NCBI GenBank assembly: GCA_002269645.1
Contig: NIVC01000483.1
Location: 1 to 64,000, forward strand
Direction: 5' to 3'
Source of the DNA: Macrostomum lignano
Lineage: Eukaryota
Length of the DNA stretch: 64,000 nucleotides
Shown here: in pieces, positions 11,701 to 63,968 of the stretch
How positions within the stretch are numbered: position 1 is the first letter of the stretch
Layout: every line of letters begins with the position of its first letter
Program-made: the position numbers and the translations under genes
The notes under the pieces: generated by a model
Told to the model about the DNA's origin: nothing
Seen by the model: the letters and a program-made list of their open reading frames with translations, nothing else
The model's database searches: none

Positions 11701-12622
11701 AAGTTTTAGTTCATTTACCCAGATTTTATTGTGAGACGAATTGAGCTGAGTTTGCTTGGCCAAACTTCAGTTTTTTAGATCATTTGTCAACTGTTAATTA
11801 CCGGTGTTTTGTCAAAAAGTTTAGCCTGTCTGTGGTTTACTACAAGTTATTTTAAAAACTCCTGATTCTCCGTTGCCAAGCACTTGCTTCCATCAGATAC
11901 TCGTACTCAAAGCGGGTATTAATTCTTCATTATTATAATACGCATCTATGTGTAGTTGATCGCATCCAAAGAGCTTGGCCTAAGACGGAATGGTCATATT
12001 TTTAAATTGTCGCCAACTTTCAACGCCGGAGATTTTTTGAGGGAAATTTTTTGCCAGCGCCAGTCCCTAGCTGGTAGCTTCTTTTTTGTAAATAACCTCC
12101 TAGAAGACATTCAGGTAGGAATGGGAAAGAAAGAAAGAGCAGGTAGGCAAGCCACCTCAAGCAGCTGCATTGTCTCGCAACACTCGGCCCACTCAAAGGC
12201 CCGCCGATTCTGTGAAACAAAGGCTGCAAATTGTATTGATTCCTGCTCACTCTCAACACCCAGTAAGCAGATTTTCCCTAAGCAGCGGAGGCTGCAGAAG
12301 CTACATTCTTTGACAATGGCTGGGTCGACGATCTTCCACACTCAGGCTCCTGTAGCAGGCGTTGAGAGAAAAACCAGTCGAAGGGCTGCTGCCTGCTCAG
12401 GGTGGCCGAGAACTGCCAAGCCTCTTTAAGCGTTCATCTGTTGAAGCATTTTCCAAGAGTTTGAGGACAATGGCAGTCAGAATTCTTTTAAAAGCCTGGC
12501 CACTTCACTATTAGGAAAGCTCCAAATCTCTAAAAAGTGATCCTTAAACTCTAGGCTTTTACTAATTTTTCCCTTCACTAATTTTGCAAACTTTTTACGA
12601 GGGTTACCGATTTGATTACGAA

Positions 12623-18711: not shown

Positions 18712-19781
18712 TTAGCCGATGACGACATAGAAGTCGCGAATCTCGCTCTCAGACATGGTGACGTTGCTCATGGCGATGGCCCGCACAGTTCCTTTGAACA
18801 TTCGAGCGTCATTCAGTCGCTTGCCGAATCTGAAGCAGAACTGAGGCAGCAGAGTATAGTTAGAATAAGTCGTCAGGCTGAAGGAAGCTTTCGGCAAGAA
18901 GGTGTCGTTCACGAACACTCCCCACGAGTCAGCCGCTGGAGTCGATGTGAATCCGATGTTCACCCACTCGTTGGCGTTCGAAGTCAGCGGAGCTGTCGAA
19001 GATTGATAGCGCGTGGGAGCGGCACCGGCTTCGGTTTTGATCACAAAAAGGAGTTTAGAAGCAACGTCGAACTCCCAGATACGGTGGTAGTAGGGTCCGG
19101 TTTCGAATTCAAGGCAGTTTAGAAAATCAAAGAAGATATGCACTCGCGGCTGCCGCTTCATCCTGAGCAGCACCGTGACGCCTGTGCCGAACCCGATGTC
19201 GCTCTTGTTCATGGCCAGAAACGAGCTGCTCCCATCGAACGCGGCGCCCTCCTCTGTCCACTGGACTCCGACCGGATAAATTCGGTTGGTCTCTTCGTCA
19301 GCCTGGCACACGACATTCTCAAATGCAGACATGTCGTCTCCGAGCCACACGTTTGTGAGCTTCGGGTTGAGCTGAGCCGGATATTTGATCGGAAATCGGA
19401 TGAGCACTCGGCAGTCGCTGCTCGCACCGCCAGAGACAAAGTCGCGACACACGGACTGGTAGCGGAAGAGACTGCAGCGGAGAGAGGCCGGCTCGAACTG
19501 GGCCACAATGATTCCGACTATATGCTTGTTGGACGCGATCACAGAGCAGTGCACATCGCTTCTCGCCTGCGCTCGGTAAATCGCGGCGGCCTCGGACAGG
19601 CACTGCACCTGCACCTGAGTCCAGGTGTCTCCGGACCTGCACTGGCAGGCAGGTATCAGAGCCATCAGCTCAAGCGCCGCCAACAGTATCCACGAAACTA
19701 AAAGAGCACAATATATTATGTTATGCCTTTCAATATTTATTGATTAAAATCAACTTGTATTTAATCGTTCTTACCTTGCAT
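18712..19781 (-). CDS. LamG-family copy C (intact)
   Basis: Mini exon ATGCAAG (19781-19775), 77-nt intron, exon 19697-18712: MQVSWILLAALELMALIPACQC...; same architecture as copy B. Confidence 0.8.
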
Positions 19782-29098: not shown

Positions 29099-29555
29099 TA
29101 CTCAGCAACAGCTAAACCCCCCCCCCCAACTCACGCTGTCACACGGGCACAAAAGTTAAGCAATGTCTTTAATTCTAGTCTCAGTATCGTGTGTAGGAAC
29201 CACGAGCATGCAAAAGTGCCGTGACTCGTCGTGGCATCCTGATCACCAGCCGGTTGATGAACTCTTGGGGCAGCTGCTGCCAGGCATTCAGCACCGCCAG
29301 TCGCAACTGTTCAGCATTCTGTGGGGCATCCTGCTGAACTCTTCGCTTTACAAAGTCCCAGACATGCTCGATGGGGTTCATGTCTGGAGACCCTCCCCAA
29401 ATCCCCCATGCCGCACTTTGCGCTCGCGTCTGGCGGCGGCAGCCTTCACACATTTCTGAGTCACCGATGGCATACAAAACTTTTAGGCCGTGTGACAGCG
29501 TGAGTGGAGGGGGTTTAGCCACAGAATATTCTGTGGTTTTAGCTGTTGCTGAGTA
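29099..29555 (-). mobile_element. Internally deleted Tc1/mariner element with transposase C-terminus
   Basis: TIRs TACTCAGCAACAGCTAAA with TA TSD; ORF 29181-29522 has SPDMNPIEHVW...NAWQQLPQEFINRLVIRMPRRVTALLHARGSYTRY (Tc1 DDE tail). Confidence 0.9.
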
Positions 29556-30059: not shown

Positions 30060-31043
30060 ATGATTCTCAAGATACTGCTGCTCACCTTGAGCCTGCAGGC
30101 AGCTGTGTGTCAGTGCAGGTCCGGAGACACCTGGACTCAGGTGCAGGTGCACTGCCTGTCCGATGCTGCCGCATTCCGCATCTCCAAGGCGGTCTCGGAG
30201 CGGCACTGCAGCATGCAGGCGACCGATGCCTTTCCATCCGGCATTCTCGTTGCCCAGTTCGAGCCGGCCTCTCTCCGCTGCAGTCTCTTCCGCTACCAGT
30301 CCGTGTGTCGCGACTACAGAAGCTCTGCTGGCGGTGCGAGCAGCGACTGCCGAGTGCTCATCCGATTTCCGATCAAATATCCGGCTCAGCTCAATCCGAA
30401 GCTCACAAACGTGTGGCTCGGAGACGACATGTCTGCATTTGAGAATGTCGTGTGCCAGGCTGACGAAGAGACCAACCGAATTTATCCGGTCGGAGTCCAG
30501 TGGACAGAGGAGGGCGCTGCGTTCGATGGGAGCAGCTCGTTTCTGGCCATGAACAAGAGCGACATCGGGTTCGGCACAGGCGTCACGGTGCTGCTCAGGA
30601 TGAAGCGGCAGCCGCAGGTGCAGCCGCTGTTTGAATTCTTAGACTGCGCCAACTTTGCCACAGGACCTTTGTACCACCACATCTGGGAGTTTTCCTCAGT
30701 GTCAAGGTTCTATGTGGTCTTCTACGATACTAATTCAGTACGTAACAGAATCATGTCGTCAGCCCTTCTTACCGCGAACGCCAGCGAGTGGATTGACCTC
30801 GGATTCACGTCGACACCGACAACGGACTCTTATGGAATGTTTGTGAACGCCTCCTTCTTGCCGATGTCTGCCATCAATTTTCAAACTTTAACTGCTTCTA
30901 TTTCGGTGTCAAAGTTTTGCTTTCGGTTCGGCAAGCGGTACAATCATGCCACCCTGTTCAAGGGCTCGGTCAAGGCCATCGCAATCGACAACAGCTTCAT
31001 GAACGAAACCGAGATTCGAGACTTCTTTGCCGCCCTACCGTGA
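30060..31043 (+). CDS. LamG-family copy D (intact, most divergent C-terminal half)
   Basis: 327-aa ORF; signal peptide MILKILLLTLSLQAAVCQC; alternative N-cassette (FRISKAVSERHCSMQATDAFPSG); shared central block; LamG tail FRFGKRYNHATLFKGSVKAIAI..MNETEIRDFF. Confidence 0.8.
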   Translation: MILKILLLTLSLQAAVCQCRSGDTWTQVQVHCLSDAAAFRISKAVSERHCSMQATDAFPSGILVAQFEPASLRCSLFRYQSVCRDYRSSAGGASSDCRVLIRFPIKYPAQLNPKLTNVWLGDDMSAFENVVCQADEETNRIYPVGVQWTEEGAAFDGSSSFLAMNKSDIGFGTGVTVLLRMKRQPQVQPLFEFLDCANFATGPLYHHIWEFSSVSRFYVVFYDTNSVRNRIMSSALLTANASEWIDLGFTSTPTTDSYGMFVNASFLPMSAINFQTLTASISVSKFCFRFGKRYNHATLFKGSVKAIAIDNSFMNETEIRDFFAALP

Positions 31044-34197: not shown

Positions 34198-34553
34198 ACG
34201 CTGCTTCTAAACTTCTTTTCGTGATCAAAACAGAAGCTGGTTCCGCTCCCAGACGCTATACAACCTCGACAACTCTGCTGACTTCGAACGCCAACGAGTG
34301 GGTGAACATCGGCTTCACATCGACTCCAGCGGCTGACTCGTGGGGAGAGTTCGTAAACGACGCCTTCTTGCCGACGTCCTCCTTGGGTTCGACTACTAGT
34401 GTCAGCTTCATCTTGCTGCCTCAGAACTGCTTCAGGTTCGGCAAGCGACTGAATGACGCTCGAATGTTCAAAGGCACTGTGCGGGCCATCGCCATGAGCA
34501 ACGTCACCATTTCTGAGAGCGAGATTCACGAATTTTACAACAATATCCAGTGA
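34198..34553 (+). pseudogene. LamG-family copy E (C-terminal half only)
   Basis: AASKLLFVIKTEAGSAPRRYTTS...EWVNIGFT...MFKGTVRAIAMSNVTISESEIHEFYNNIQ*; clear homology starts at ~34198; central block absent. Confidence 0.7.
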
Positions 34554-35859: not shown

Positions 35860-36445
35860 AGCGTCAGGGTCAGGGAGCGGCACCAGCTTTGGCTTTGAAC
35901 ATCCGTGCTCCTAGATAAAGTGGTGGATAATTCCAGTTTCGAAGTCAAAGCAGTTTAGAAAATTGAAGAAGATCTGCACCTGCGGCTGCCGCTTCATCCT
36001 GAGCAGCACCGTGACGCCTGTGCCGAACCCGATGTCGCTCTTGTTCATGGCCAGAAACGAGCTGCTCCCATCGAACGCGGCGCCCTCCTCTGTCCACTGG
36101 ACTCCGATCGGATAAATTCGGTTGGTCTCTTCGTCAGCCTGGCACACGACATTCTCAAATGCAGACATGTCGTCTCCGAGCCACACGTTTGTGAGCTTCG
36201 GGTTGAGCTGAGCCGGATATTTGATCGGAAATCGGATGAGCACTCGGCAGTCGCTGCTCGCACCGCCAGAGACAGGTCGCGACACACGGACTGGTAGCGG
36301 AAGAGACTGCAGCGGAGAGCGGCCGGCTCGAACTGGGCAACGAGAATGCCGGATGGAAACGCATCGGTCGCCTGCATGCTGCAGTGCTGTTCCGTGAATG
36401 CCTTGGAGATGCGGAATGCGGCAGCATCGAACAGGCAGTGCAAGG
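35860..36445 (-). pseudogene. LamG-family copy F (pseudogene)
   Basis: D-type N-cassette without signal peptide, -1 frameshift at ~36275, intact central block, TGG>TAG nonsense at 35911-35913, only a residual KAGAAP after it. Confidence 0.8.
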
Positions 36446-37417
36446 CGGAACAGTACAAGATACAAAAGATTGAATGGTAGCTTCTAGTGGTCTTCACTGC
36501 ATACTCTTATCTTTGAAAGTTTTTTTTTAGTTTTTACAGTATTTCAAAGTGTTTGAACTTGAACGTAATAAAAGGTGCAATTGTGTAAATTTCAATAAAC
36601 GATACATCATGGCCCATCATGGGATAGACAACGTTTCCTATGTAACTTCTTGTCTTATGTATTCTTGAGATTACATGAAAAAAGTGTCGACACTCCCCAA
36701 GAGCAACATCTAGATGTAGCAAGCTATACTTGGACAAAAATAGGGCGTCCGAGCATACCCAGTCACGTGTTGTTGGCTGACGAAATACGAGTAATAGTCT
36801 CACCTGAGCTTGGGAGGGGGCATTGGGTCTGCAGGGCCAAAGCAAGCCATCGACATGTACGCAGGCATCTCTTGCTTCTCCTCTGCCTGCACTGGTCAGT
36901 AGAATTCTGCCTGAATAGAAATCCACGCTTTGTGCACTGAAATTTTTCAGGACAATGGCTCAAGGGAATGAAGAAAACACTTGAGTAAACACGCGGCCAG
37001 GCTTTAAGGTAGAACTATTTTAACGCTACTCAAACTTGAATGCGAATTGTTCCTCCCTCTGCCTGTCTGTTTTTTCTTTCTGTTCCAAAACTCGTTTCAG
37101 CTCGTGTATGTATTTTTCGTCTGCAAGCGTTGTAAAAACGTATTAACGACGCAATACAAACATACAGAAATTTATAAATCTAGCTTTAAGATCCAGAAAC
37201 CTCCGTTGCTAGAATAAGTTCCTGCGAAGTTTTTTAACATCCGGTCGTTAATTGCAGGTAGTTTTTAACTCATTTTGTACGAGCTAAGATTTCTTATGTC
37301 ACTGAATCTGCCTATCCGCTCTCACCTCAGTCTCTGAATCTGGCTCTACGCTCTCCCTCAGTCCCTGAATCTGCCTCTCACTAATGAAGTCATTTGACCC
37401 CTTCCTTCTAGCAAACA

Positions 37418-42249
<4,832 letters not shown>

Positions 42250-44760: not shown

Positions 44761-47578
44761 TTCTATTTATGGATGGAGTGTAGTGAACGACTCTTGAAGA
44801 ATGGCAGATTTTAACCAGCCTTTTTCCTAGTCTATAGAGTATACTTTAGATCTACCTTAATAAGCTTATTGTCCAAGGCCATAATTTGCTTATTATTGCG
44901 ATTATTTCAAGACATATGATCACATCGGAGATCATACTATAATATATGTTAGAAATTTCTTATTAATGTAAATTGTATTGGCAGTTGAATTAGAAGTTGG
45001 CATAAATATAGCATATTTCTCCTTATATATTATATTAACCATAAAATGTCATAAATTGGATAAAAAGCTTGGCATACATTGGTATAAAATTTGATAAATT
45101 GTCTTTTTTTCCTAGTGACCTAGCTAAAGCCTATTTCTACAATATATAAATATATATTCCATAGTGATAGCTCGGAACACTATATGTACCTAAGAAAAAA
45201 ATGACCAAATTTTTTGGTGTATGCCAATATATGCCAAATACATTACCTTATGGCAGAGCTTCAAATTGTAAATTTTGAAACATTTAATACTTTATTAGTG
45301 ATTTTGACATTTAGGCTAGGCCTAGGCCTAGTTTCAACTTTCAATTAGATTAGATGCAGTTAAACAAAAAAGAATTTTAATATTTATATTTGTCTAAGTA
45401 TCATATTTTGTATATATGTAACACATATTTTGTATATATATATATAGAGAAAAAAACAGTTGGTATATTTTTTTAATTTCAAATTATTACCTTGTAAAAA
45501 TATAGAAATCAATTTTGGGTAAAATAGTTACCAAATTTTATGATTATAATGCATAAACAACTTATAATTCTTTTTGAAAACATACTTTTTTAATTTTCTA
45601 TGCATATGATATACCAAAATACTAAACTAAAAGGCAAAACCCAAAATCACTTTTTATATGCCAATATATACATCAAATTTCTTGGATGTACCCTAGAAAC
45701 TTTAGGAATATATATCTTTTTCTTGACTAGGTCTATGATATATTGTATACTATTATAGACAGCTTTGTTTATTTTTTGAATAATAGCAAGGTGCTGGTTC
45801 ATTTAGTAGTTTTTCAACAGAAATCAGATTGAAGAGAAAACAAGGGGAGAGTGATTCGTGTCACTGCCATTGCCATATATTTATAGATTTGTAAATGTCT
45901 TCTAGAAATTTCTAGAAAGATTGAGCACATCTTAACAAAGCAAATAAACACTTAATTATATACATTACGCAAATACAAGTAGAATATTAACAGTGGAGTA
46001 ATAATTAATTATTTACTATTTATATGCATATGTAATAGATAAGCTGCTAACTTGAAGAAGTTTCTGGAAAAATAATAATGTTTTAACTTTTAGAAATCTA
46101 ACAAAATTTTGAGAAAGTTATTAAAGTATGCTATACCATCTCAAATTATATTATAGATAGGTTTCTAGATAGGTATATATCTTATCACTATCAATATAGT
46201 ATATAATTAAAATATTTCTTGATATTATTATTGCATAAAATTATATTATTAATACTTATAGAGCACCTATTATATTTTAAATGCTAAATTAGCTGGCCAA
46301 AAAAGGTTAACAAGTATATAGACCTATCTATGTGGCACTGTTCCTATGGTTTCTTTATCACTTAAATAAAAGGCTAAATTTTATTAACTTTACTTAGTTG
46401 TCTTGTTAACATTAAACAAAAGTGCTTTTGGCAATTGAAGTTATCTAGCTAATAAAAAAAATCGAAATAAGTATACTAATATACTAGTAGTATATTATTA
46501 TTAATATAAAAATTTTTTAATTATTAACTTTAGCATTTTATTGGAGATTGACTGTGATCGTAGGCTTAGTCACAATCATGAAAACTATGATTACGAGGAA
46601 AAAAATCGCATATTGTCTGTTGCCAATCATAATTTGTGAATTTCTTGATTTAAACCTTACTTTTTAAGTCGTAGCACAATATTCTAAAATATATGATTGT
46701 GAAAAGCAAACCAAAATTGTTACAAATCAGCATAGATATAACAAAGCCACATAATAAAATATGGTAAAACAATAAACTTAATAAAACAAAGCTTAAAAAT
46801 CAATACAAATTGCTAGACTTAGTAGTATTAAAACAAATAGTTTTATGTCTAATTTAAAATGTATGTTAAAAAATTCATGGTCATGCATTGTTTCATGCAT
46901 TGTCTAGTTCTAATCATGCACAAAAGAAAAAATCATAGTTGGTCAATCCCAAATTTTTATCTAGTTTTTTTTTACTTTGCCTAACACTGCCACCTAGAAT
47001 AGATATTAGGTTACTAGGAATTAGATGTAAGATGCTCTTATTCTAAAATGCCAATGTCTCTAAACTAAAAATTGCGCCAATATTTAAATATTATTTATAT
47101 AGCCCTAGGTCTTACAAATTTAAAGTATTTCCCAAACTCTTTTCAAACTAACTATAAATATAAAGACATTCAAACTATATTATTATATGCTTATTCAACT
47201 GAAAATATACTAACTATATAGTAGTGTAATATAGTACATAAGTTATTTTTATAATTATTTATTTATTGATAAGATTTTAATCAAGCCGGAATATGATATA
47301 TATCTAGTAAAAACTCACAACTGGTTTTTTTAATAGTAATTAAAATATGACTAACATTAAGAGTCTAATGTTTAGATGTTTTTCAATTTTATGAATTAAT
47401 AATCATTTTCCAATCTGTAATTAATAATATAATTACAATAATAGCTAACATAAAACAATTGAATAATATAGATGATAAAATTTTCATTTCTTTCTACTTG
47501 TATCATCCTTTGGAACACTAAACTATGTGCCTCTATACTGCACCTTGGAATTTATGCTGTACCAGAAAAAGCTACATC

Positions 47579-50500
47579 ATGTCTCTGTCTGAACAATTTC
47601 TGTCTGAGCAGTCAGTCTGCTTGGAGCAATTCTCCACTTGGTCAGAAATGGAACAGGTGAACTTTGTTGAACAGTTACTGGGCAGTATGTCGCATTATCA
47701 GCATGGCCAAGTGCAGGAATACTTAGCTCCCATGCTGCAGCGAGACTTTATCAGTGTACTGCCAACATGTGGCTTGGATCATTTGGCTGAGCGAATCTTG
47801 GCCTGTTTGGATGCAAAATCTCTGGCCTCTGCTGAGATGGTGTGCAGCGAGTGGCGACGGGTTGTATCTGAGGGCCTGCTGTGGCGTAAGCTGATTGAGT
47901 CGCAGGTGAGCGTTGAGAGGATTGACTTTGGGGACTCAAATATTTGGTTAGCAACTGTTTAGTTTCTGGCCCAGCCTCCCAGATCCTCAGTTGCTGGGCC
48001 AGCCTCCCAGATCCCTAGTTGCTGGCCCAGCCTCCCAGATCCTCAGTTGCTGGGCCAGCCTCCCAGATCCTCAGTTGCTGGGCCAGCCAGCCTCCCAGAT
48101 CCTCAGTTGCTGGGCCAGCCTCCCAGATCCCCAGTTGCTGGGCCAGCCTCACAGAGTGTCAGTTGCTGGGCCAGCCTCCCAGATCCTCAGTTGCTGGGCC
48201 AGCCTCCCAGATCCTCAGTTGCTGGGCCAGCCAGCCTCCCAGATCCTCAGTTGCTGGGCCAGCCTCCCAGATCCCCAGTTGCTGAGCCAGCCTCACAGAG
48301 TGTCAGTTGCTGGGCCAGCCTCCCAGATCCCCAGTTGCTGGGCCAGCCTCCCAGATCCTCAGTTGCTAGGCCAGCCTCCCAGATCCCCAGTTGCTGGGCC
48401 AGCCTCCCAGATCCTCAGTTGCTAGGCCAACAGCCTCCCAGATCAGTTTCTGGGCCAGCCTCCCAGATCCTCAGTTGCTGGGCCAGCCTCCCAGATCCTC
48501 AGTTGCTGCTTGCTGGGCCAGCCTCCCAGAGTGTCAGTTGCTGGGCCAGCCTCCCAGATCCCCAGTTGCTGGGCAAACCAGACAAACCGCACTGTACTTT
48601 AAAATTTGCTTGCAGGTGCGCAGAAGCAATCTGTGGCGCGGGCTGGCCGTCCGCAGAGGCTGGCTGCGAGACCTGCGCCGGCCGCAGCGAGACGGAGCGG
48701 AGAGCGACGTCGGCAGTTCAGACAGCCACTACAGGCAGCTGTACCCGAAGATTCTCAGCGACATCAGGCGAATCGAGAGCAACTGGGCCAAGGGCAGTTT
48801 TAAATTGCGTCGAATTCAATGCCGAAGCGAATCTTCCAAAGGAGTTTATTGCCTGCAGTACGACGAGGACAAGATTATTAGCGGCCTAAGGGATAACACC
48901 ATCAAAGTGTGGGATCGTAAATCTCTTGAGTGTACTAAGGTAAGGGATTCGGATTTCGGAATGGGGATAATAATATAGCATTAATCTTTGTGTAGAGGAT
49001 TCAAATCAAAAAATCGTAGGTGATTATCGATTTAGGTTATTTTATCAATTGGGATTATAAAACACAAGAGGGGATTATCAATTGGGATAATTAATCACTG
49101 GAGGGGATTATCGATTGGGATTATAAACCACAAGAGAGGATTATCAATTGGGATTATAAACCACAAGAGAGGATTATCGATTGGGATTATTAACCACAAG
49201 AGGGGATTATCAATTGGGATTATTAATCACTGGAGGGGATTATCGATTGGGATTATAAACCACAAGAGAGGATTATCAATTGGGATTATAAACCACAAGA
49301 GAGGTTTATCAATTGGGATTATAAACCACAAGAGAGGTTTATCAATTGGGATTATAAACCACAAGAGAGGTTTATCGATTGGGATTTTAAACCACAAGAG
49401 AGGATTATCAATTGGGATAATTAATCACTGGAGGAGATTATCGATTGGGATTATAAACCAAAAGAGAGGTTTATCAATTGGGATTTTAAACCACAAGAGA
49501 GGTTTATCAATTGGGATTATAAACCACAAGAGAGGTTTATCAATTGGGATTATAAACCACAAGAGAGGATTATCAATTGGGATTATTAATCACTGAAGGG
49601 GATTATCGATTGGGATTATAAACCACAAGAGAGGATTATCAATTGGGATTATAAACCACAAGAGAGGATTATCAATTGGGATTATTAACCACAAGAGAGG
49701 ATTATCAATTGGATTATAAACACATTGGGATTATTAACTTATCACCACAAGAGAGGATTATCAATTGGGAGAGAGGATTATCAATTGGGATCAGAGAGGA
49801 TTATCAAACTATGGGATTAGAGAGGATTATCAATTGATTATGCATCTCCCTTATCCGATATCCCCATCATACAATTATCACACAAACCAGGTGCTATCCA
49901 GTCATATGGGCTCCGTACTGTGCCTCCAATACGACGATGACATAATAATTAGCGGCTCCTCTGACAGCACAGTGCGAGTCTGGGACGTGCGCACTGGCCA
50001 ACCGTTGAACACACTGTATCATCATTGCGAGGCCGTGCTCCATCTGCGCTTCTGCGACGGCCTGATGGTCACGTGCTCCAAGGACAGATCCATAGCCGTG
50101 TGGGACATGCACTCGCCTAGCGACATCGCGCTTAGACGAGTTCTAGTAGGCCACCGAGCCGCCGTGAATGTTGTAGATTTCGATTCGCGCTACATTGTGT
50201 CAGCTTCCGGCGATAGGACTATTAAAGTTTGGCACACTGCCAGCTGCGAGTTTGTGCGCACCCTGAGCGGTCACAAGCGCGGCATCGCCTGTTTGCAGTA
50301 TCGCGATAATCTGGTTGTTAGCGGCTCGTCTGATAATTCTATCAGACTGTGGGATATCGAGAGCGGAATCTGTCTGCGAGTGCTCAATGGTAAGTTTGAA
50401 ACTGTAGATTCACTTCAAACTTCAAAGGCGCCGCCCCAACCTTTCATTAAACCCTTATCGGTAAGCATCAAAGGCCCGCCTTTCATTGAACCCTTTTCGG

Positions 50501-51292
50501 CAAACATCAAAGACCCGACTTTTATTGAACCTTTCACCAGGCACCCCGACTCTCCTTAAACCTTTTTCGGCAAAATTCAAAGGCACCTTCAGACTTTTAT
50601 TGAACCCTTTCGATAAACATCAAAGGTGTGTCTTTCATTGAACCCTGTCGGTGAACTCCGATTGCCCGTCGGTAAACTTCAAAGGCACCTCCCGACTTTC
50701 ATTGAACCTTTTTTCGGTGAACTTCAAAAGCACCTCCCCACTTTCATTGAACCTTTTTCGTTAAACATCAAAGGCACCTCCCGACTTTCATTGAACCTTT
50801 TTCGGTAAACATCAAAGGCACCTCCCGACTTTCATTGAACTTTTTTCGGTGAACATCAAAGGCACCTCCCGATACGATAGTTATTATCTTAATCCCCCTG
50901 CAGGGCACGAAGAGCTGGTCCGCTGCATCCGTTTCGACTCCAAACGAATTGTGTCCGGCGCCTACGACGGCAAGATCAAAGTGTGGGACCTGCAGGCCGC
51001 CCTTGACCCCAGATCGTCGGCCGACGCGCTGTGCATCGTCACACTCAGCGAACACTCTGGCAGGGTGTTCCGCTTGCAATTCGACGAATTCCAGATCGTT
51101 TCATCGTCCCACGACGATACTATCTTAGTGTGGGATTTCCTTGGCGACGATGGGGATCAGGGGGGCATTAAGGAAGCCGCCGATGAAGAGGTTGATGAGG
51201 CTGTTGTGCTGCACTTTGCCGATGCCGACGCCGAGGATGAAGGCGGCGGTGGAGACGCCGAAGACAACGAGGCCGGAGATGAAGATGATTGA
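47579..51292 (+). CDS. BTRC: beta-TrCP / slimb F-box WD40 protein
   Basis: Exons 47579-47905, 48616-48939, 49891-50389, 50904-51292. D-domain ([21 protein letters not shown]), F-box ([20 protein letters not shown]), WD40s [71 protein letters not shown]. An upstream coding exon is possible. Confidence 0.95.
47965..48575. repeat. 28-bp minisatellite filling a beta-TrCP intron
   Basis: (GGGCCAGCCTCCCAGATCCTCAGTTGCT)n. Confidence 0.9.
49040..49835. repeat. 33-bp minisatellite filling a beta-TrCP intron
   Basis: (GGATTATCAATTGGGATTATAAACCACAAGAGA)n. Confidence 0.9.
50420..50872. repeat. ~44-bp minisatellite filling a beta-TrCP intron
   Basis: (ACTTTCATTGAACCTTTTTCGGTAAACATCAAAGGCACCTCCCG)n. Confidence 0.85.
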
Positions 51293-54620: not shown

Positions 54621-57600
54621 TTACTCAGCTGACTCGGCCGAGCTGCTGCTGCTTAGCGAGGAGTCCGACGTCCAGGCAGCCTCATTGTCGTCATCTTGGG
54701 TGGTCGCCGCGTTGTCTCCGACGCCTGGAAATTCCGTCAGCGTCGCCGTGCCGCCAAACCTCACGGCGGAAACTTTGGCGGCGGCATCGCGACCGCTGTT
54801 TCTTGCCTTCTGCTTCGACTTTCGCTTTCGTCTGCTAGCGTTTTTTTCGCCTTTGCGTTTCTTAGAATCCGCATCCCGAAGTTGTTCTGGCGAATGCATG
54901 GTCTGTAGAACAGCGCGCAGCAGGCACAGGAACGCTTCGCTGGCGCTCTCCGAGTCTAGCGCCGTTGCCTCGCGCCAAACCAGGCCGTGGCGCCGAGCCA
55001 GCGCCAGGCCGGACTGAGCTCCGGAGGGCGTAGGGAGCTCGCGGCGGTCGAGCTTGTTGCCGATCAGAGCGATGGGGGCGTCGGCTGGTAGTCCGACGCT
55101 GTCGCCGTCCTGTGCCGGGCGCAGTCGCTGCAGCCAGGCCTCGCAGTCGCGGAGGCTGTCCGCGTCAGTGACGTCATAGACCAGCATAGCACACTGGCAG
55201 CCGCTGTAGTAGCCCTCCGAGTTGCTGCGATGGCTGGGAGTAATGGCGGTGGACTTTGTTAGCACCTACCTCACTCCCTGCACCCACCTCACTCTGCACC
55301 CACCTCAATCTGCACCCACCCCACTCCCTGCACCTACCTTACTCCCTGCGCCCACCTCACTCCCTGCACCTACCTCACTTCCTGCACCCACCTCACTCCC
55401 TGCGCCCACCTCACTCCCTGCACCCACCCCACTTTCCGCACCCGCCTCACTCCCCGCACCCACCTCACTCCCCGCGCCCACCTCACTCTGCACCCACCTC
55501 AATCTGCACCCACCCCACTCCCTGCACCTACCTTACTCCCTGCGCCCACCTCACTCCCTGCACCTACCTCACTTCCTGCACCCACCTCACTCCCTGCGCC
55601 CACCTCACTCCCTGCACCCACCTCACTCCCTGCACCCACCCCACTTTCCGCACCCGCCTCACTCCCCGCACCCACCTCACTCCCCGCGCCCACCTCACTC
55701 CCCGCACCCACCTCACTCCCCGCGCCCACCTCACTCCCCGCACCCACCTCACTCCCCGCGCCCACCTCACTCTGCACCCACCTCAATCTGCACTCACCCC
55801 ACTCCCTGCACCTACCTTACTCCCTGCGCCCACCTCACTCCCTGCAGCTACCTCACTTCCTGCACCCACCTCACTCCCTGCGCCCACCTCACTCCCTGCA
55901 CCCACCTCACTCCCTGCACCCACCCCACTTTCCTGCACCCGCCTCACTCCCCGCACCCGCCTCACTCCCCGCACCCACCTCACTCCCCGCGCCCACCTCA
56001 CTCCCCGCACCCACCTCACTCCCCGCGCCCACCTCACTCCACACATCCCTTCGCGCACCACCGTGCGAACGTCAAAATCTCCTCACCTCTCCTGACCGGC
56101 AGTGTCCCAAATCTGGCATTGGACCGGCACCCCGTCAACCTTGACCAGTCGGCTCTGCAGACTCGCGGCCACTGTCGGCGCATACGATTCGTTGAATTGG
56201 CCGCCTACAAAGCGAGCCAGAAGGCTTGACTTGCCAACGCCAGCGTTCCCAACAACGATTACTGCGGGAGTTGATCGGTTTAATCATTGGTAAACATACT
56301 CGTAAAGTTGTTTGGCGCCATCGATTCTTATCGTTTAGTTTGGCGCCATTTGTGTTCAGTTTGGCGCCATTTGTGTCTAGGTTGACGCCTTTAGTGTCTA
56401 GTTTGGCGCCATTTGTGTCTAGTTTGGCGCCATTTGTGTCTTATTTAAAAGCCCTAAAAATCGCCCAAGATCACCATTGACGAGCACAGCAGGCCTGTCG
56501 GGCACAGACGCAGTCTGGGACTCAATCAACGGCAGCTCCTCCACGCTGGCACCTGGCGGCGCGCTTTGCCGCTGACTGTCAACGGTGAATCTGGACAAAA
56601 CTTTCGAATCGAAATTCGACGAACTCATATCTTTGACACTCGCCAGCATGCTGTCAATCTCTGCTATCCGTATTGACGCGTTGGCCGCCTTCGGCGCTGT
56701 CTCCGCCTTCTGAAGCTTCATCTGGGCGAGGCAGCGACTCTGCAGGCCCCTGAAAGCCTGGCCGACATTCTGTCCGGTGCGGGCGCTGACGCCCCAGCAC
56801 AGCTCGACGCCGTGCGACTTGGCGAACACGTCAGCCTCCTCCTGAGTCACGGCGGCCTCATCCGAGTCGCTCTTGTTGGCCACCAGAGCCACGGGCGTGG
56901 ACTCTGGCGCGGAGGCCCGCAGCTCCTGCAGCCAGCGCTCGCAGCTGTCGAAGCTGTCGCGGTTCGAGGCGTCGAAGATCAGCAGGGCGCCGGCGCAGCC
57001 TCGGTAGTAGGCGCTCGTGATGGAGCGGAACCTGCGGATGTCGGGGAGGGGCGAAGGGCGGTCTAAGGGGTGTTATGGTTTAGGTTTTATGATCCAGGTG
57101 TTATGATCCAGGTATTATGATCCAGGTGTTATGATCCAGGTGTTATGATCCAGGTGTTCTAATCCGGGTGTTATGATCCGGGTGTTATGATCCAGGTGGT
57201 ACGATCCAGGTGTTATAATCCAGGTGTTATAATCCAGGTGTTATAATCCAGGTGTTATAATCCAGGTGTAATGATCGAGGTGTTATGATTCAGATAATTA
57301 TGATCCAAGATTTATAATTTGAGTGTCATGATTCCGGTGTTTTAATATAGGTTTATGAGCCTAGATTCATGATTCAGTTATTATGATCCAGGTGTTAAGG
57401 TCCCTGCTGTCTAATGAGTTAATGATAGTAACTTATGTGTAAATCTAATGGGTTTTATAACACAATTTCGTCCAGAAATAAAGTTAATAAAGGAAAGAGC
57501 GAGCTATCCAACTTCAACCTCACCTCTGTTGTCCTGCCGTATCCCAAATCTGAGTTTTCACTCGCGACCCGTCAATGTCGCTGTTCACCACGCGAAAGTC

Positions 57601-60600
57601 CACTCCGATGGTGGGCGTTGCCTTGAGGCTCTAAATTCCTGGTCAATAAATTGGCGGACCAGGCAGGACTTGCCGACGCTGGAGTCTCCGATTAGCACCG
57701 CTGCGTGTGGGTGTGGGCATTGTGAGCATTGTCACACCCACCTCACTCTGCACCCACCTCACTCTGCACCCACCTCACTCTGCACCCACCTCACTCTGCA
57801 CCCACCTCCGAACCTCACTCCACTCCGCACCCACCTCACTCCGCACTCACCTCATTCCGAACCCACCTCACTACACACCCACCTCACTCCACACCCACCT
57901 CACTCCACACACACCCCACTTCACGCCCACCTCACTCCGCACCCACCTCACTCCGCACCCACCTCACTCCGCACCCACCTCACCCGCGCCCACCTCACTC
58001 CACACCCGCCGCACTCCGCACCCAGCTCACTCCACACCCAGCTCACTCCACACCCACCTCACTCCACACCCACCTCACTCCACACCCGCCGCACTCCACA
58101 CCCACCTCACTCCACACCCACCTCACTCCACACCCGCCGCACTCCGCACCCAGCTCACTCCACACCACCTCACTCCACACCCACCTCACTCCACACCCGC
58201 CGCACTCCGCACCCACCTCACTCCACACCCACCTCACTCCGCACCCACCTCACTCCACACCCACCTCACTCCACACCCACCTCACTCCACACCCGCCGCA
58301 CTCCACACCCACCTCACTCCACACCCGCCGCACTCCGCACCCAGCTCACTCCGCATATCCATCTCACTTCGCACCCACGTAACAGTCAGATGGTAAAGAC
58401 AAGGATGCTATATCTCACTTTTTATCACATAGTCAGGAGAGCGATCATCGTTCAGGTTTGCCTGTCCCACTGCTGCTGGCTTCGAAATGGGAGACTCCTT
58501 CGACTGCTCAGTAGATTTACTCGTATTGATGGCCTTCGGAGCGAAAGTAGTCGATTCGTTTGACTGCTGGGTCTGTGCCAAACTAGGAATCGGTTTTAAA
58601 GAGAAAATATTTGCGTTGTTATGCGGATAAAGTTGTGTTGCTATGGGGATGAATTTGTGTTGCTATGGGGATGAAGTTGTGTTGCTGTGTTTGAGGTTGT
58701 GCTGCCATGGGGACGAAGTTTTGTTGCTATGTGAATGACGTTGTGTTGCTATGACGATGAGAATGTATAGCTAAAGGGATTAAATGCTGTTGCAAAGGCC
58801 AGACACCAACCCGAATTGCTGGCTCTGGCTCTGCAGCACCCGACTCTGCAGGCCCCTGAAAGCCTGGCCGACATTCTGTCCGGTGCGGGCGCTGACGCCC
58901 CAGCACAGCTCGACGCCGTGCGACTTGGCGAACTCGTCAGCCTCCTCCTGAGTCACGGCGGCCTCATCCGAGTCGCTCTTGTTGGCCACCAGAACCACGT
59001 GCACGGACTCTGGCGCGGAGGCCCGCAGCTCCTGCAGCCAGCGCTCGCAGCTGTCGAAGCTGTCGCGGTTCGAGGCGTCGAAGACCAGCAGAGCGCCGGC
59101 GCAGCCTCTGTAGTAGGCGCTCGTGATGGAGCGGAACCTGCGGATGTCGGGTAATTTATGGATGGGTTTGGCCCTAGTCTAACAGGTGTCTCTGTCTAAC
59201 AGGTGTGAAGCCCCAGTCTAACAGGTGTGAAGCCCCAGTCTAACAGGTGTGAGGCCTCAGTCTAACAGGTGTGAGGCTCTGTCTAACAGGTGTGAGGCCT
59301 CTGTCTAACAGGTGTGAGACCTCTGTCTAACAGGTGTGAGACCTCTGTCTAACAGGTGTGAGGCCTCTGTCTAACAGGTGTGAGGCCTCCGTCTAACAGG
59401 TGTGAGGCCTCTGTCTAACAGGTGTGAGGCCTCTGTCTAACAAGTGTGAAGCCCCAGTCTAACAGGTGTGAGGCCTCTGTCTAACAGGTGTGAGGCCTCT
59501 AACAGGTGTGAGGCCACTGTTTAACAGGTGTGAGGCCTCTGTCTAACACGTGGGAGGCCTCTGTCTAACAGGTTTGAGGCCCCAGTCTAACAGGTGTGAG
59601 GCCTCTGTCGAACAGGTTTGAGGCCCCAGTCTAACAGGTGTGAGGCCTCTGTCTAACATGTGCGAAGCCCCAGTCTAACAGGTGTGAGGCCTCTGTCTAA
59701 CAAGTGTTAGGCCTCTGTCTAACAAGTGTTAGGCCTCTGTCTAACAGGTGTTAAGCCCCAGTCTAACATGTGTGAGGCCTCTCTCTAACAGGTGTGAAGC
59801 CCCAGTCTAACAGGTGTGAGGCCTCTGTCTAACAGGTGTGAAGCCCCAGTCTAACAGGTGTGAGGCCTCTGTCTAACAAGTGTGAAGCCCCAGTCTAACA
59901 GGTGTGAGGCCTCTGTCTAACAAGTGTGAAGCCCCAGTCTAACAGGTGTGAGGCCTCTGTCTAACAGGTGTGAAGCCCCAGTCTAACAGGTGTGAGGCCT
60001 CTGTCTAACAGGTGTGAAGCCCCAGTCTAACAGGTGTGAGGCCTCTGTCTAACAAGTGTAAAGCCCCAGTCTAACAGGTGTGAGGCCTCTGTCTAACAAG
60101 TGTGAAGCCCCAGTCTAACAGGTGTGAGGCCTCTGTCTAGCATATAAGCCTTCTCAGGTTAGCGTAATTCCATCTCAAACTTACCTCTCCGCACCAGCTG
60201 TGTCCCAGAACACACTCTTGACTCGACAGCCATCAATATTGTCTTTCACAGCTCGAAATTCCACTCCAATGGTTTGTGGCATTTCGTTAGTGGCATCAAA
60301 TTCTTTGTCTGCAAATCGCTGAAGCAAGCTGGACTTTCCAACACCGGAGTCGCCAATTAGAAGAACTGAATGATAAATTGAATGAGCGTAATACAATAAT
60401 TCTTTATTTTTACCTTCTACAATAAAAAAGTTCAATCCTGCTTACCTTTTATCTGATAATCAATATGTTCGTTAGAATTTTCACTTTTCTTAGGCACCAA
60501 CTGAGGCAATTGTCGCATGTCAGTTGAATTCATTGGAGCCTGATTTGAACTCAGTCTGTGGGAAGGCGAAACCCTAAGTTCTTGGTTACCATGCGAGAGT

Positions 60601-63600
60601 ATCGTGTTGCCATGCGAGACTAGCGTGTTGCTATGCGAGACTATAGTGTTGCAATGCTTTCTATTCTGAAACCTTCGGTAGCTCAATAACTAACCCATCA
60701 ACTTTGCTCTGCAGCACCCGACTCTGCAGGCCCCTGAATGCCTGGCCGACATTCTGTCCGGTGCGGGCGCTGACCCCCAGCACAGCTCGATGCCGTGCGA
60801 CTTGGCGAACTCGTCAGCCTCCTCCTGAGTCACGGCGGCCTCATCCGAGTCGCTCTTGTTGGCCACCAGAACCGCGTGCACGGACTCTGGCGCGGAGGCC
60901 CGCAGCTCCTGCAGCCAGCGCTCGCAGCTGTCGAAGCTGTCGCGGTTCGAGGCGTCGAAGACCAGCAGAGCGCCGGCGCAGCCTCGGTAGTAGGATGATG
61001 TTATTGTGCGGAATCTGGAGTTTTGTTGAAGTCAGAGGAAAGTGTACATTAGGGGGTAGAGATTGAATGGGTTGATAAGAGACAAATGTACATTTGGAGG
61101 GGTAGAGATTAAATGGGGTTGGTCAGACAAGTGTACATTTGGAAGGGGTAGAGATTGAATGAGTTGATAAGAGACAAGTGTACATTTGGAAGGGGTAGAG
61201 ATTGAATGGGTTGATAAGAGACAAGTGTACATTTGGAAGGGGTAGAGATTGAATGAGTTGATAAGAGACAAGTGTACATTTGGAAGGGGTAGAGATTGAA
61301 TGGGTTAATAAGAGACAAGTGTACATTTGGAGGGGTAGAGATTGAATGGGGTAGGTAAGAGATAAGTGTACATTAGGGGTAGAGATTCGGGTTGATCAGA
61401 GGCAAGTGCGCACAAGTAAAAATGCAAGGAATCACCTCTCTTGTCCAGCGGTGTCCCAGATCTGGCACTTGATGCTTGACCCATCGATTTCATTTTGAAC
61501 AATTTTGAAGTTCACACCAATTGTTGGCGTCGCGTTTTGACTTTCGTCAAATGAGTTTTCAGCAAATCTGCGCAACAGGCAGGATTTCCCGACTCCGGAA
61601 TCGCCTATGAGCAGCACTGTGGAATTAAAGATAAACAAGATGATTTCTTAATATAAAAAGCCTTTTAAGGACAAATATTTTTAATTTAAACTGAAAGAAA
61701 TCGCACATTTTATCACGCGTTGCTGTTTTGCTTCAGCTGCCGTCTCGGATCCGTCAACAGCAGTTCTGGACTCTGGGTTTTGAGCTGCTTTGACTTTATT
61801 TTGTCTGAAAAGAATGTTTGGTAAAGTGAGTTTTTAACCAGACACGTTCTTAACCAGACACGTTCTTAAACGAACTAGACACGTTCTTAACCGAACTAGA
61901 CACGTTCTTAACCGAACTAGACACGTTCTTAACCGAACCAGACACGTTCTTAACCGAACCAGACACGTTCTTAACCGAACCAGACACGTTCTTAACCGAA
62001 CCAGACACGTTCTTAACCGAACTAGACACGATCTTAACCGAACTAGACACGATCTTAACTGATAGACACGTTCTTAACCGAACTAGACACGTTCTTAACC
62101 GAACTAGACACGATCTTAACCGATAGACACGTTCTTAACCGAACTAGACACGTTCTTAACCGAACTAGACACCTTGATTCACAGAGTGAAAACACATTCT
62201 AACAGAATCAGACCAGGGTAGAGCTGTTTAGAGCGCGCTCAAACTCACTCAGTTTTGCTGCCTTCAGCTCCCTGACCATCTGCCGTGGTGGCAGCGGCAG
62301 CGGCTGCGGCGGCAGCGACCTGCCTCACCAGTTCCTTCCTGTCGTCGCCCCAGGCCCGGAATCGCCGAAAGAACTCTTTGTCGGGTCGATCGTGCAAAGC
62401 GGCCCAATCCAGGCCCTGAGCAGACCGCGACATCGGATGCCTGCTCAGCCAATCTTGCCGTTTAGCCATCATCTCATCGCTTGTCGTCGTTGCAGCAGCA
62501 GCTTCAGCCAAGTCTTTGGACTCGCTTAGCAACTCAATAGCGAGAATGTAGGCCTGGTCTAGCCATCGAATATAAGAGCCGTAGCATTCAGTCTGTTCGA
62601 TGACGTCATTGGCCAGGGCAAGGGCTCGTTTGGGATTGCCGGCGGCTCGGTGCAGCCTTTAGAGATGAAAAAAGTATTTAAATTATTGAATCTCAATTAG
62701 ATGACCCAAGTTTACCAAATGTTGATCTAATAGCCGAGTTAAACAATTAAAATTGACAGACTCATGCAGTGACTAGCAGACTCAAAATATCAGACTCAAA
62801 ATATCATAGATTCGAAATCAACCAGACTCAGAATCTCACAGACTTAAAATCCCAGACTCAGAATTTGACAGACTCAAAATCTCATACTCAAAATCCCAGA
62901 CTCAAACTCTCCCAGATTCAAAATCTCCCAGATTCAAAATCTCAAAGGCTCAAATCTCAGAGACTAAAAATCACCCAGACTCAAAATCTCACAGACTCAA
63001 AATCCCAGACTCAAACTCTCCCAGATTCAAAATCTCATAGATTCAAAATCTCTCAGATTCAAAATCTCAAAGGCTCAAATCTCAGAGACTAAAAATCACC
63101 CAGATTCAAAATCTCAAACTCAGAATTTGACAGACTCAAAATCTCACAGACTCAAAATTTCACACTCAAAATCTCACAGACTCAAAATCTCATACTCAAA
63201 ATCCCAGACTCAAACTCTCCCAGATTCAAAATCTCCCAGATTCAAAATCTCCCAGATTCAAAATCTCACAGACTCAAAATCTCAGTATCCAAATCCCAGA
63301 CTTAACATCTCAGACTCAAAATCACCCAGACTCAAAATCTCACAGACTCAAAATCTCACAGACTCAAAACCTCAGACTCAAAAATTTCAGACTCAAAATC
63401 TCAGAATAAAAAATCTGACAGACTAAAAAATGGCCTACTTAGCCAACTGGAGTTTAGCTCTGAGCAGCAGGTGCCCTTGAGCTGGTTGGCTGTCAATCAG
63501 CGCTTCTAGAGCTTCATCAGCCAGCCGCTCAGCCTCCGGACGGTACTCCCCCGAAGGCACATCGGCCAGAAGTCTGCCCAGACAGATTCTGGCTTGCACA

Positions 63601-63968
63601 GCTGCCGGACTGTGCCGACCGATGGTATTCGAGAGAATTTCAACAGATTTTCTACCGAATTCGATGGCGACTTGAAGCAGTTCAACTGGCAGGATGGCGG
63701 GGTTCGCTAGGCGAGCAGCTTGGGCTAGATTAGTCATCAAGGAGGCAGCGTTGGGATGCTGAGATGCCGACTCGCCAGAGCTCATTCTGACTGCGGCTAG
63801 AGAAGCTTCCACGTGAGCGACAACTTCTTGGGGCTCCGCAGTTGCACCCTGACCGCGGCGGCTGCGATGACGGAGCCGTAGAAGCTGCGCCAACGACAGG
63901 TGCGACTGGACTTCGGCTAGTAGCGGGTGCTGGTAGCCCAGGATGAGCTGAGCGAATAAAGATGCGTT
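54621..63968 (-). CDS. Multi-exon gene: TPR-like helical repeats fused to four tandem Rab-type GTPase domains (5' end beyond window)
   Basis: Exons 5'->3': 63968-63439, 62656-62249, 61804-61707, 61616-61436, 61014-60695, 60555-60446, 60365-60185, 59137-58811, 58582-58419, 57700-57524, 57031-56475, 56261-56087, 55233-54621. All GT-AG and phase-compatible after restoring 1 nt at ~60775 and 1 nt at ~57622; >=1280 aa. G1 motifs [32 protein letters not shown], each followed by WDTAG and NKxD. Confidence 0.8.
55262..56040. repeat. 18-bp C-rich minisatellite in Rab-domain-4 intron
   Basis: (CACCCACCTCACTCCCYG)n; source of spurious P/H/T-rich ORFs. Confidence 0.9.
56320..56442. repeat. ~21-bp intronic tandem repeat
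   Basis: (TTTGGCGCCATTTGTGTCTAG)n. Confidence 0.8.
57085..57400. repeat. 14-bp intronic minisatellite
   Basis: (ATCCAGGTGTTATG)n. Confidence 0.85.
57733..58380. repeat. C-rich intronic minisatellite with CACCCACCTCACTC core
   Basis: (CACCCACCTCACTCC[A/G]CA)n. Confidence 0.9.
58630..58760. repeat. ~22-bp degenerate intronic tandem repeat
   Basis: (GTTGTGTTGCTATGGGGATGAA)n. Confidence 0.7.
59175..60140. repeat. 22-bp intronic minisatellite with two alternating variants
   Basis: GTCTAACAGGTGTGAGGCCTCT / GTCTAACAGGTGTGAAGCCCCA. Confidence 0.9.
61040..61400. repeat. 47-bp intronic minisatellite
   Basis: (GGAAGGGGTAGAGATTGAATGGGTTGATAAGAGACAAGTGTACATTT)n. Confidence 0.9.
61835..62175. repeat. 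21-bp intronic minisatellite
   Basis: (CCGAACTAGACACGTTCTTAA)n. Confidence 0.9.
62775..63425. repeat. Degenerate intronic minisatellite
   Basis: CAGACTCAAAATCT-core units. Confidence 0.85.

Follow-up and report, generated by a model that had tools for sequence, protein, structure and literature searches.

Do the fragments of Rab GTPase coding sequence that are scattered over one scaffold of the flatworm Macrostomum lignano belong to a single gene, and if so, what does this gene encode? The fragments lie on the minus strand, at 63968-54621 of a stretch of 64,000 nucleotides (positions 1 to 64,000 of contig NIVC01000483.1, assembly GCA_002269645.1). This whole stretch is called the window; positions are those of the window unless another sequence is named. 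An earlier note on this DNA had joined the fragments into one polypeptide with TPR-like repeats and four tandem Rab domains. The analysis reported here leads to a similar but larger protein. Window 54621-63968 probably corresponds to the 3′ two-thirds of one gene (cluster Mlig031168; this copy, BOX15_Mlig031168g2). The whole reading frame is likely to encode about 1800 aa (196 kDa), namely a CARD, an APPBP2-like TPR domain, three Rab1-like GTPase domains (Rab-a, Rab-b and Rab-c) and one divergent Rab domain closest to Rab11 (Rab-d).

Gene model

The exons were rebuilt independently (Table 1). They join into a single open frame of 13 exons with four Ras/Rab domains, as the earlier note had proposed, and all 12 introns of this model are of the GT...AG type. 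When the exons are concatenated, reading stays open in frame 0 up to exon 5, where it switches to frame 2, and from there up to exon 10, where it switches to frame 1; the frame thus closes only after repair of two lesions. In an intact copy of the locus (L002, see below), the frame includes 1281 codons (3846 nt over 13 exons). Pfam recognises four stretches of the Ras family in the repaired product (E=1e-181). The linker exons end in the N-terminal motif of a Rab, as had been claimed (QRVIK/L, DYQIK/V, DYVIK/T and AVLVN/V; a slash marks an exon boundary here and below). Two further copies of the locus have these 13 exons and these splice sites, which is more than chance. Exon 1 begins at a splice acceptor (63968); the gene therefore extends past the window. 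About 519 more residues, including the CARD, are encoded upstream on the same scaffold, outside the window. The CARD had been missed in the earlier note, and it changes the likely biology of the protein.

Copies of the locus and frame lesions

The window copy (L003; window position x is position 77847-x of this locus on scaffold NIVC01000483.1, GCA_002269645.1) was compared exon by exon with L004 (NIVC01003072.1:1-27795) and L002 (NIVC01003072.1:56782-84581). L004 is 99.3% identical to the window copy over 18.5 kb. L002 is a homeologous copy, about 92-98% identical to the window copy. Each of the three copies retains every one of the 13 exons with its splice sites, and the phases fit at all 12 junctions. 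L002 is indel-free in every exon and its 3846-nt frame is open without repair.

Two single-base deletions had been assumed in the window copy. One of them is found: compared with both other copies, one C is missing between 60775 and 60774, in exon 5 (TGCTGGGG[C]GTCAGC). The lesion of exon 10 is larger, four nucleotides (GACG) being missing between 57633 and 57632 (GAATTT[GACG]AGAGCC), and is accompanied by a G->A substitution at 57680 that turns the P-loop GDSGVGKS of Rab-c into GDSSVGKS. Both frame breaks are specific to this copy. Exons 5 and 10 are passed unbroken by gene models of ML2, an older assembly of the species (UniProt A0A1I8FWW3, A0A1I8FYK8, A0A1I8FSL7). In L004, a run of five G in exon 1 (near window 63553) is one G short, which is why the coding sequence (CDS) of this copy begins only in exon 2.

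The Mlig_3_7 assembly was made with Canu from PacBio reads and polished with short reads; it includes 180 Mb of near-identical duplicated sequence (PMC5730564). Exons 5, 8 and 11 are 91-96% identical to one another, so that short reads cannot be placed uniquely in them. The two frame breaks of the window copy may have been introduced by assembly or polishing, or one redundant copy may really be damaged. The former is somewhat more likely, although a 4-nt deletion with a nearby substitution is atypical of homopolymer error.

The tandem order itself could be an artefact, i.e. a mis-joined or expanded repeat. Assembly is made hard by the likeness of exons 5, 8 and 11 and by the minisatellite-rich introns. 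Against this, the same 13-exon order is found on three scaffold regions and also in the ML2 gene models. The exons encoding the N-terminal halves of Rab-a, Rab-b and Rab-c differ by 33-38%, so these units are not collapsed copies of one another. An artefact of this kind is extremely unlikely.

L002 carries an insertion of about 290 bp directly past the exon-6 acceptor (L002:17700-18007; the site corresponds to about window 60555) that is absent from the window. The acceptor is present twice (...CCCACAG/ATTCATAC... and then ...GCACAG/ATTGAGTTC), and CACAGAT flanks both sides of the insertion, which looks like a small transposable element. It provides a stop codon and an AATAAA, and thereby creates the alternative last exon of the protein PAA53536.1.

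Intron lengths vary up to four-fold among the three copies. Minisatellites fill 7 of the 12 window introns; they are different in each intron, with periods of 14-47 nt and up to 44 copies. In each of the three copies, a CFAP90 gene lies ahead of the CARD exons.

Annotated coding sequences

An annotated CDS is available for each copy. PAA82250.1 (BOX15_Mlig031168g2, partial, 1003 aa) is that of the window copy and covers the CARD, the TPR region and Rab-a. It ends in ...AKLMD at window 60551, 5 nt into exon 6; to end there, the model must follow the shifted frame of exon 5 and splice this exon to exon 6. PAA53531.1 (BOX15_Mlig031168g1, 1043 aa) is the CDS of L004. It begins at ATGATG within exon 2, and is identical, residue for residue, to the 13-exon model from the Met of exon 2 through the stop of exon 13. 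PAA53536.1 (1063 aa) is the CDS of L002. Its exon 5 is spliced to the first of the two exon-6 acceptors, with a stop 33 codons on and an AATAAA soon after. In the ML2 model, the second acceptor is used and the frame continues into Rab-b.

These annotations derive from RNA-seq reads assembled by StringTie and TACO, cut by TBONE at evidence of trans-splicing or polyadenylation, and searched for open reading frames (ORFs) by TransDecoder (PMC5730564). PAA82250.1 and PAA53531.1 have a common transcript-cluster name and overlap across exons 2-5. The simplest reading is that of one transcript running from the CARD to Rab-d, in which TransDecoder would have taken the longest ORF on each side of the frame break. 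One mRNA through the four Rab domains, as formerly postulated, is thus what the public RNA-seq-guided annotation gives (PAA53531.1). Two of the three annotated CDSs end shortly after Rab-a; PAA53531.1 runs through exons 2-13.

The gene is already deposited as a hypothetical protein (PAA53531.1; UniProt A0A1I8FWW3, A0A1I8FYK8). Literature searches returned no paper on tandem Rab/Ras-domain proteins and none mentioning this gene. The architecture is real and unstudied.

Rab domains

Rab-a, Rab-b and Rab-c share 76-78% identity with one another and 46-53% identity with Rab1. Rab-d shares 34-37% identity with all the sequences compared. The best PDB matches are Rab1 for Rab-a to Rab-c (1e-47) and Rab11 for Rab-d (1e-30). 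Motifs G1-G5 are found in all four domains (GDSGVGKS/GNAGVGKS; TIGV/PTV; DTAG; NKSD/NKLD; SAR/TAL). The RabF motifs, previously ascribed to the array as a whole, are present in Rab-a to Rab-c (IGVNF/IGVEF/IGVDF, RFRTIT/RFRSIT, YYRGC, LVFD) and weak in Rab-d (VAASL, SHRSNS, YYSGC, LVYDVT). Rab-a to Rab-c have a 2-aa insertion ahead of switch I, and Rab-a does not differ from Rab1 in switch II. The catalytic Gln is found in Rab-a, Rab-c (DTAGQQ) and Rab-d. Rab-b has Ala at this position (DTAGAE), and this holds for both homeologous copies.

The linkers between domains (39-81 aa) are of low complexity and consist of 70-92% small or polar residues. No Cys of a prenylation motif (CC, CXC or CaaX) is found in the last 10 residues of the protein; this end therefore cannot be geranylgeranylated. 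A polybasic stretch follows Rab-d (window 54780-54870, exon 13) and precedes an acidic Ser-rich end. It could be either a nuclear localisation signal or an electrostatic membrane anchor replacing the missing lipid.

CARD and TPR region

The Pfam CARD model matches residues 38-106 (37 bits for a cut-off of 23.9), in the part of the gene that lies outside the window on the same scaffold. In Pfam, the TPR region gives only a sub-threshold TPR_12 match. An exhaustive phmmer search returned six CARD-TPR proteins of about 800 aa without GTPase (E 1e-37 to 1e-54), with alignments reaching up to query residues 29-800. Their sources include the annelid Owenia fusiformis (A0A8S4N315), the brachiopod Lingula anatina (XP_013395164, deposited under the name 'amyloid protein-binding protein 2'), the gastropods Babylonia and Physella, and the nemertean Tubulanus. 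These spiralian relatives align end to end with the M. lignano protein (23-26% identity) and end where exon 2 ends. In the alignment of M. lignano with its spiralian relatives (A1), a CARD match is found in all seven members. The same alignment used against a word-indexed database returned only two M. lignano proteins and unrelated TPR proteins.

The N-terminal exons of the window had been described as encoding TPR helices like those of kinesin light chain (KLC) and NPHP3. They do encode TPRs; the best match is APPBP2, kinesin light chain coming second. The CARD-TPR family profile matches human APPBP2 (PDB 8JAQ/8JAL) over residues 40-574 with E=9e-42. Its other matches are kinesin light chain TPRs (1e-5 to 1e-7) and the CARDs of RAIDD and ICEBERG. 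The M. lignano TPR region alone, compared with the PDB by phmmer, gives no match, and APPBP2 is reached by the family profile only. The AlphaFold2 model of PAA53536.1 has a mean predicted local distance difference test (pLDDT) score of 70. It includes a CARD helical bundle at 29-129 (pLDDT 80-91), then a disordered stretch, about 30 helices (165-818), a disordered linker and a Rab fold. Foldseek run with this model gives 8JAQ (APPBP2) first (E=1.7e-10, target-normalised TM 0.53, about 620 columns) and Rab1b next.

By profile and by Foldseek, the TPR fold is thus the same as that of human APPBP2 (PAT1), which is the substrate receptor of a CRL2 ubiquitin ligase for R-x-x-G C-degrons (PDB 8JAL, 8JAQ) and whose degron-pocket residues include Y338, Y341, Y345, R380, E387, E388, R437 and H476 (PMC10614623). 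In an alignment of about 17% identity, 1 of 18 pocket residues is kept in M. lignano (R437, aligned with Arg) and 1-2 of 18 in the spiralian relatives. Unlike in APPBP2, where residues 1-39 form the VHL box that binds Elongin B/C and CUL2, no match to this box appears in the sequence, and a CARD and a disordered stretch stand there instead. Orthology with APPBP2 is rejected: neither the VHL box nor the degron pocket is kept.

Relic stops and origin of the array

Rab-a, Rab-b and Rab-c are each encoded by a module of three exons: the linker exon runs to the first beta-strand, and the next two exons encode the N-half and the C-half of the domain. The earlier proposal that the array was built by duplication of exon modules is supported by this repeated arrangement. 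The C-half exons (5, 8 and 11) have 63-67% G+C. The N-half exons (4, 7 and 10) have 62-67% DNA identity and 47-56% G+C. Such uniform C-halves next to divergent N-halves fit continuing gene conversion, apparently limited to exons, within one gene.

If its downstream intron is retained, every exon meets a stop within 1-18 codons. When exon 2 is read through, the stop comes one codon on (KTE*). The read-through tails of exons 5 and 8 start alike (GLV), and that of exon 8 ends in CNSI*, a CaaX-like end as in some Rabs. The Cys and the stop of this tail are kept in all three copies despite 13% divergence of intron 8. The tail may be left over from a once independent Rab, or it may form the end of a short, prenylated isoform. 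T at +3 occurs in the donors of exons 5 (GTTAGT) and 8 (GTTGGT) and in no other donor. Shorter isoforms that end after Rab-a or Rab-b through retention of intron 5 or 8 are likely, the one ending after Rab-b being CaaX-like.

The Rab domains could also belong to separate genes arranged in tandem, possibly in a polycistronic unit resolved by spliced-leader trans-splicing, and be fused only on paper. The relic stops past Rab-a and Rab-b and the in-frame ATGs of exon 6 would fit separate genes. In M. lignano, 38.8% of genes are trans-spliced and multi-gene transcriptional units exist (PMC5730564). However, exons 3 and 9 are devoid of in-frame ATG, and the end of Rab-c and the start of Rab-d are encoded by one exon. 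In addition, all 12 junctions are in phase in each of the three copies, and a pipeline that cuts at evidence of trans-splicing or polyadenylation left exons 2-13 as one CDS. Separate genes are therefore very improbable. The earlier statement that no clean stop/start pair separates the domains is true only in part, given the stops met on intron retention and the ATGs of exon 6.

The reading of the locus as one gene leaves its origin to be explained. The spiralian relatives have nothing beyond the point where exon 2 ends, so the Rab array is an addition of this lineage, as had been suspected. The TGA on the donor of exon 2 is likely to be the stop codon at which the CARD-TPR gene originally ended. 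An older spiralian CARD-TPR gene (about 800 aa) would have been extended in 3′, a splice donor arising on top of its stop codon. Cryptic donors would have arisen a few codons ahead of the stops of downstream tandem Rab genes. Three-exon Rab1-like tandem genes and one further Rab gene would thereby have become internal exons. This scenario is drawn from the sequences of the locus and of its relatives.

Selection and the status of Rab-b to Rab-d

When the window type and L002 are compared, the ratio of non-synonymous to synonymous divergence (dN/dS) is lowest for Rab-b (0.24), followed by Rab-b to Rab-d taken together (0.35), the TPR exons (0.36) and Rab-a (0.43). In Rab-b to Rab-d, 21 synonymous and 24 non-synonymous differences are found over 549 and 1758 sites, respectively (chi-square about 13 against neutrality, a test that gene conversion renders rough). 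In the segment that starts at exon 11 and reaches at least 1 kb beyond the stop (window 54621-57031 and its flank; L002:21102-24343), the homeologues differ by 0-1%, introns included. Upstream of exon 11, their exons differ by about 3-6% and their introns by 3-18%. Strong purifying selection on exons 11-13 was considered and rejected, because introns 11-12 and the 3′ flank are as identical as the exons. This identity indicates gene conversion and makes the segment uninformative on selection. It suggests a recent conversion or exchange between homeologues from exon 11 on.

Several observations weigh against one protein from CARD to Rab-d. No copy in the assembly has an undisturbed path between the two: the frame breaks in exons 5 and 10 of the window copy and in exon 1 of L004, and L002 has the insertion of about 290 bp at the exon-6 acceptor. 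The transcript-based CDSs of two of the three copies (PAA82250.1 and PAA53536.1) stop shortly after Rab-a, so the full-length protein remains predicted. A 353-aa query across the junctions of exons 5-10 retrieved other Rabs and multi-Rab proteins from the protein collection, and no Macrostomum sequence. The dN/dS signal is of moderate strength, and conversion, both among exons 5, 8 and 11 and between the homeologues from exon 11 on, makes it less clear.

Rab-b to Rab-d could accordingly be a decaying or untranslated 3′ extension (3′ untranslated region, or skipped), the real product being CARD-TPR with one Rab. The two CDSs that end just past Rab-a fit an untranslated extension, the presence of some lesion or insertion in each copy fits decay, and the T at +3 of the exon 5 and 8 donors favours retention of the relic stops. 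Decay is opposed by L002, where 769 codons from Rab-b to Rab-d are kept open with intact splice sites, by dN/dS values of 0.24-0.35 instead of 1, and by motifs G1-G5, intact in all four domains. Furthermore, two of the three lesions lie in or adjoin G runs, as PacBio consensus errors typically do; the repeated exons are difficult to correct with short reads, and the ML2 gene models cross exons 5 and 10 unbroken. Such an extension is unlikely, and a single gene encoding a four-Rab protein is the more probable reading.

Features of the window

The features of the gene and of its neighbourhood are listed in Table 1. The neighbourhood includes five or six paralogous single-exon ORFs (320-340 aa) that encode a hydrophobic N-terminus and conserved blocks (e.g. 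NVWLGDDMSAFENVVCQADEETNRIYP). Some copies are broken. No Pfam match was found in the two that were tested.

Table 1. Exons of the four-Rab gene and other features of the window. Rab-a to Rab-d are numbered from the 5′ end of the gene. Exon 1 of the window is about exon 7 of the gene.
Feature	Position	Strand	Content
Exon 1	63439..63968	-	TPR helices, APPBP2-like domain; acceptor ccag/AACGCA
Exon 2	62249..62656	-	Last TPR helices and Ala-rich tail; donor on in-frame TGA (ACT GA/G TGA)
Exon 3	61707..61804	-	Linker ending ...QQRVIK, N-terminal strand of Rab-a; without in-frame ATG
Exon 4	61436..61616	-	Rab-a N-half: GDSGVGKS ... TIGVNF ... DTAGQER
Exon 5	60695..61014	-	Rab-a C-half; weak donor GG/GTTAGT; C missing (60775/60774)
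Relic tail and stop, read on retention of intron 5	60661..60694	-	11-residue tail
Exon 6	60446..60555	-	Linker ending ...HIDYQIK; in-frame ATGs (MNSTDM...)
Exon 7	60185..60365	-	Rab-b N-half: GDSGVGKS ... TIGVEF ... DTAGAER; catalytic Gln -> Ala
Exon 8	58811..59137	-	Rab-b C-half, 96% identical in DNA to exons 5 and 11; weak donor GG/GTTGGT
Relic tail, read on retention of intron 8	58780..58810	-	CaaX-like end CNSI*
Exon 9	58419..58582	-	Ser/Thr/Gln-rich linker ending ...SPDYVIK; without in-frame ATG
Exon 10	57524..57700	-	Rab-c N-half; GACG missing (57633/57632); G->A at 57680; other copies intact
Exon 11	56475..57031	-	Rab-c C-half and 80-aa linker up to first Rab-d strand (...PAVLVN), in one exon
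Exon 12	56087..56261	-	Rab-d N-half: GNAGVGKS ... DTAGQES
Exon 13	54621..55233	-	Rab-d C-half (NKLD, TAL), polybasic stretch, acidic Ser-rich end, stop; without C-terminal Cys
Minisatellites in introns	55262-56040, 57069-57397, 57733-58352, 59190-60139, 61053-61374, 61852-62172, 62777-63429		
Cytochrome P450, first exon	1049-1414	-	
Paralogous ORFs	12673-13689, 18712-19683, 30060-31043	+, -, +	
Fragments of paralogous ORFs	11272-11763, 34221-34553, 35911-36465	-, +, -	
DDE transposase fragment	29181-29522	-	
Sodium:dicarboxylate symporter (SDF) gene	37418-41903	+	Long microsatellites in introns
Beta-TrCP-type F-box/WD40 gene	47525-51292	+	

Proposed function

Judged by its domain content, the protein would be a soluble signalling scaffold rather than a lipid-anchored Rab. 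The roles suggested in the earlier note, a multi-switch scaffold or an effector/GEF decoy, are conjectural. Through its CARD, the protein would join homotypic death-fold assemblies with the CARDs of caspases or adaptors. The TPR solenoid would bind a peptide ligand other than an R-x-x-G degron. The four nucleotide-binding modules would present different switch faces on near-identical C-halves; at least one of them, Rab-b with its DTAGAE motif, is probably slow or incapable in GTP hydrolysis. Together, the modules would allow GTP-dependent multivalent binding of Rab1- or Rab11-type partners.

A more specific role can be envisaged by analogy with the integrated-decoy domains of plant nucleotide-binding leucine-rich repeat (NLR) proteins and with pyrin, which senses Rho inactivation. 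The protein might be an innate-immune guard in which a CARD-TPR scaffold bears Rab1- and Rab11-like baits, the likeness of Rab-a to Rab1 being complete in switch II. Effectors by which pathogens modify or bind the Rab1 or Rab11 of the host would hit these baits and trigger CARD-driven signalling of the caspase or NF-kB type. This idea is very improbable. If it were true, the divergent N-halves (switch faces) carried by homogenised C-halves would correspond to a diversification of baits.

Rabs are viewed as single-domain, lipid-anchored switches that mark membranes. If made, this 196-kDa soluble protein would join Rab-type switching and CARD signalling, which are not known to be combined in one chain, and would be a natural case for what tandem GTPase domains do. 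The locus also displays a route of construction, with donors on or just before old stops and a conversion that homogenises one half of each module but leaves the other free to diverge. Transgenesis and RNA interference exist for M. lignano, so the gene is directly testable.

Comparison with known systems

Large Rabs (Rab44, Rab45/RASEF, Rab46/CRACR2A) are similar in having a long chain with extra N-terminal domains before the Rab. They carry EF-hands and a coiled coil, one C-terminal Rab and a C-terminal prenylation site. No EF-hand match was found in Pfam scans of either half of the M. lignano protein. Membership of this group is rejected, as EF-hand matches are lacking and four Rab domains are found instead of one.

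Canonical Rab1 and Rab11 share motifs G1-G5 and the RabF motifs with the M. lignano domains. Unlike in these Rabs, the domains are internal to a 196-kDa chain and no prenylation motif is found; RFRSIT is replaced by SHRSNS in Rab-d.

Ras-like GTPase domains are also embedded in ROCO proteins (DAPK1, LRRK2) and in Miro, all of which consist of several domains; DAPK1 has a death-fold domain and Miro has two GTPases. None of them is known to have tandem Rab-type domains. Assignment to ROCO proteins is rejected: the Pfam Roc score (399 bits) is below that of Ras (598 bits), and no COR or kinase match is found.

The earlier note knew of no tetra-Rab protein. One was in fact already deposited (PAA53531.1), and predicted proteins with 3-8 tandem Rabs exist. 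Gene models of the rotifer Rotaria include 5 and 6 Ras domains (6 in CAM4892538.1 of Rotaria socialis). An ENA metagenome scaffold carries an uninterrupted 4905-nt ORF (L001:5001-9905; 1634 aa) with 8 Ras domains. A 2.3-kb Logan contig carries a complete 569-aa ORF (L006:328-2037) with three Rab domains. The 3- and 8-domain ORFs are uninterrupted and thus are not artefacts of gene prediction. In the three sequences that were read, i.e. the 8-domain ORF and the two Rotaria models, a C-terminal Cys is absent. As in M. lignano, these multi-Rab proteins of rotifers and others consist of complete Rabs joined in one chain by short polar linkers; unlike the M. lignano protein, they have neither CARD nor TPR. 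They are 30-39% identical to the M. lignano domains, i.e. less similar to them than Rab1 is, which makes an independent origin likely; the rotifer-type proteins probably arose on their own. These sequences suggest that multi-Rab proteins are an overlooked, unstudied class.

The closest relatives over the N-terminal part remain the spiralian CARD-TPR proteins, which end at the exon-2 point and have no GTPase; unlike them, the M. lignano gene adds about 970 aa and four Rabs.

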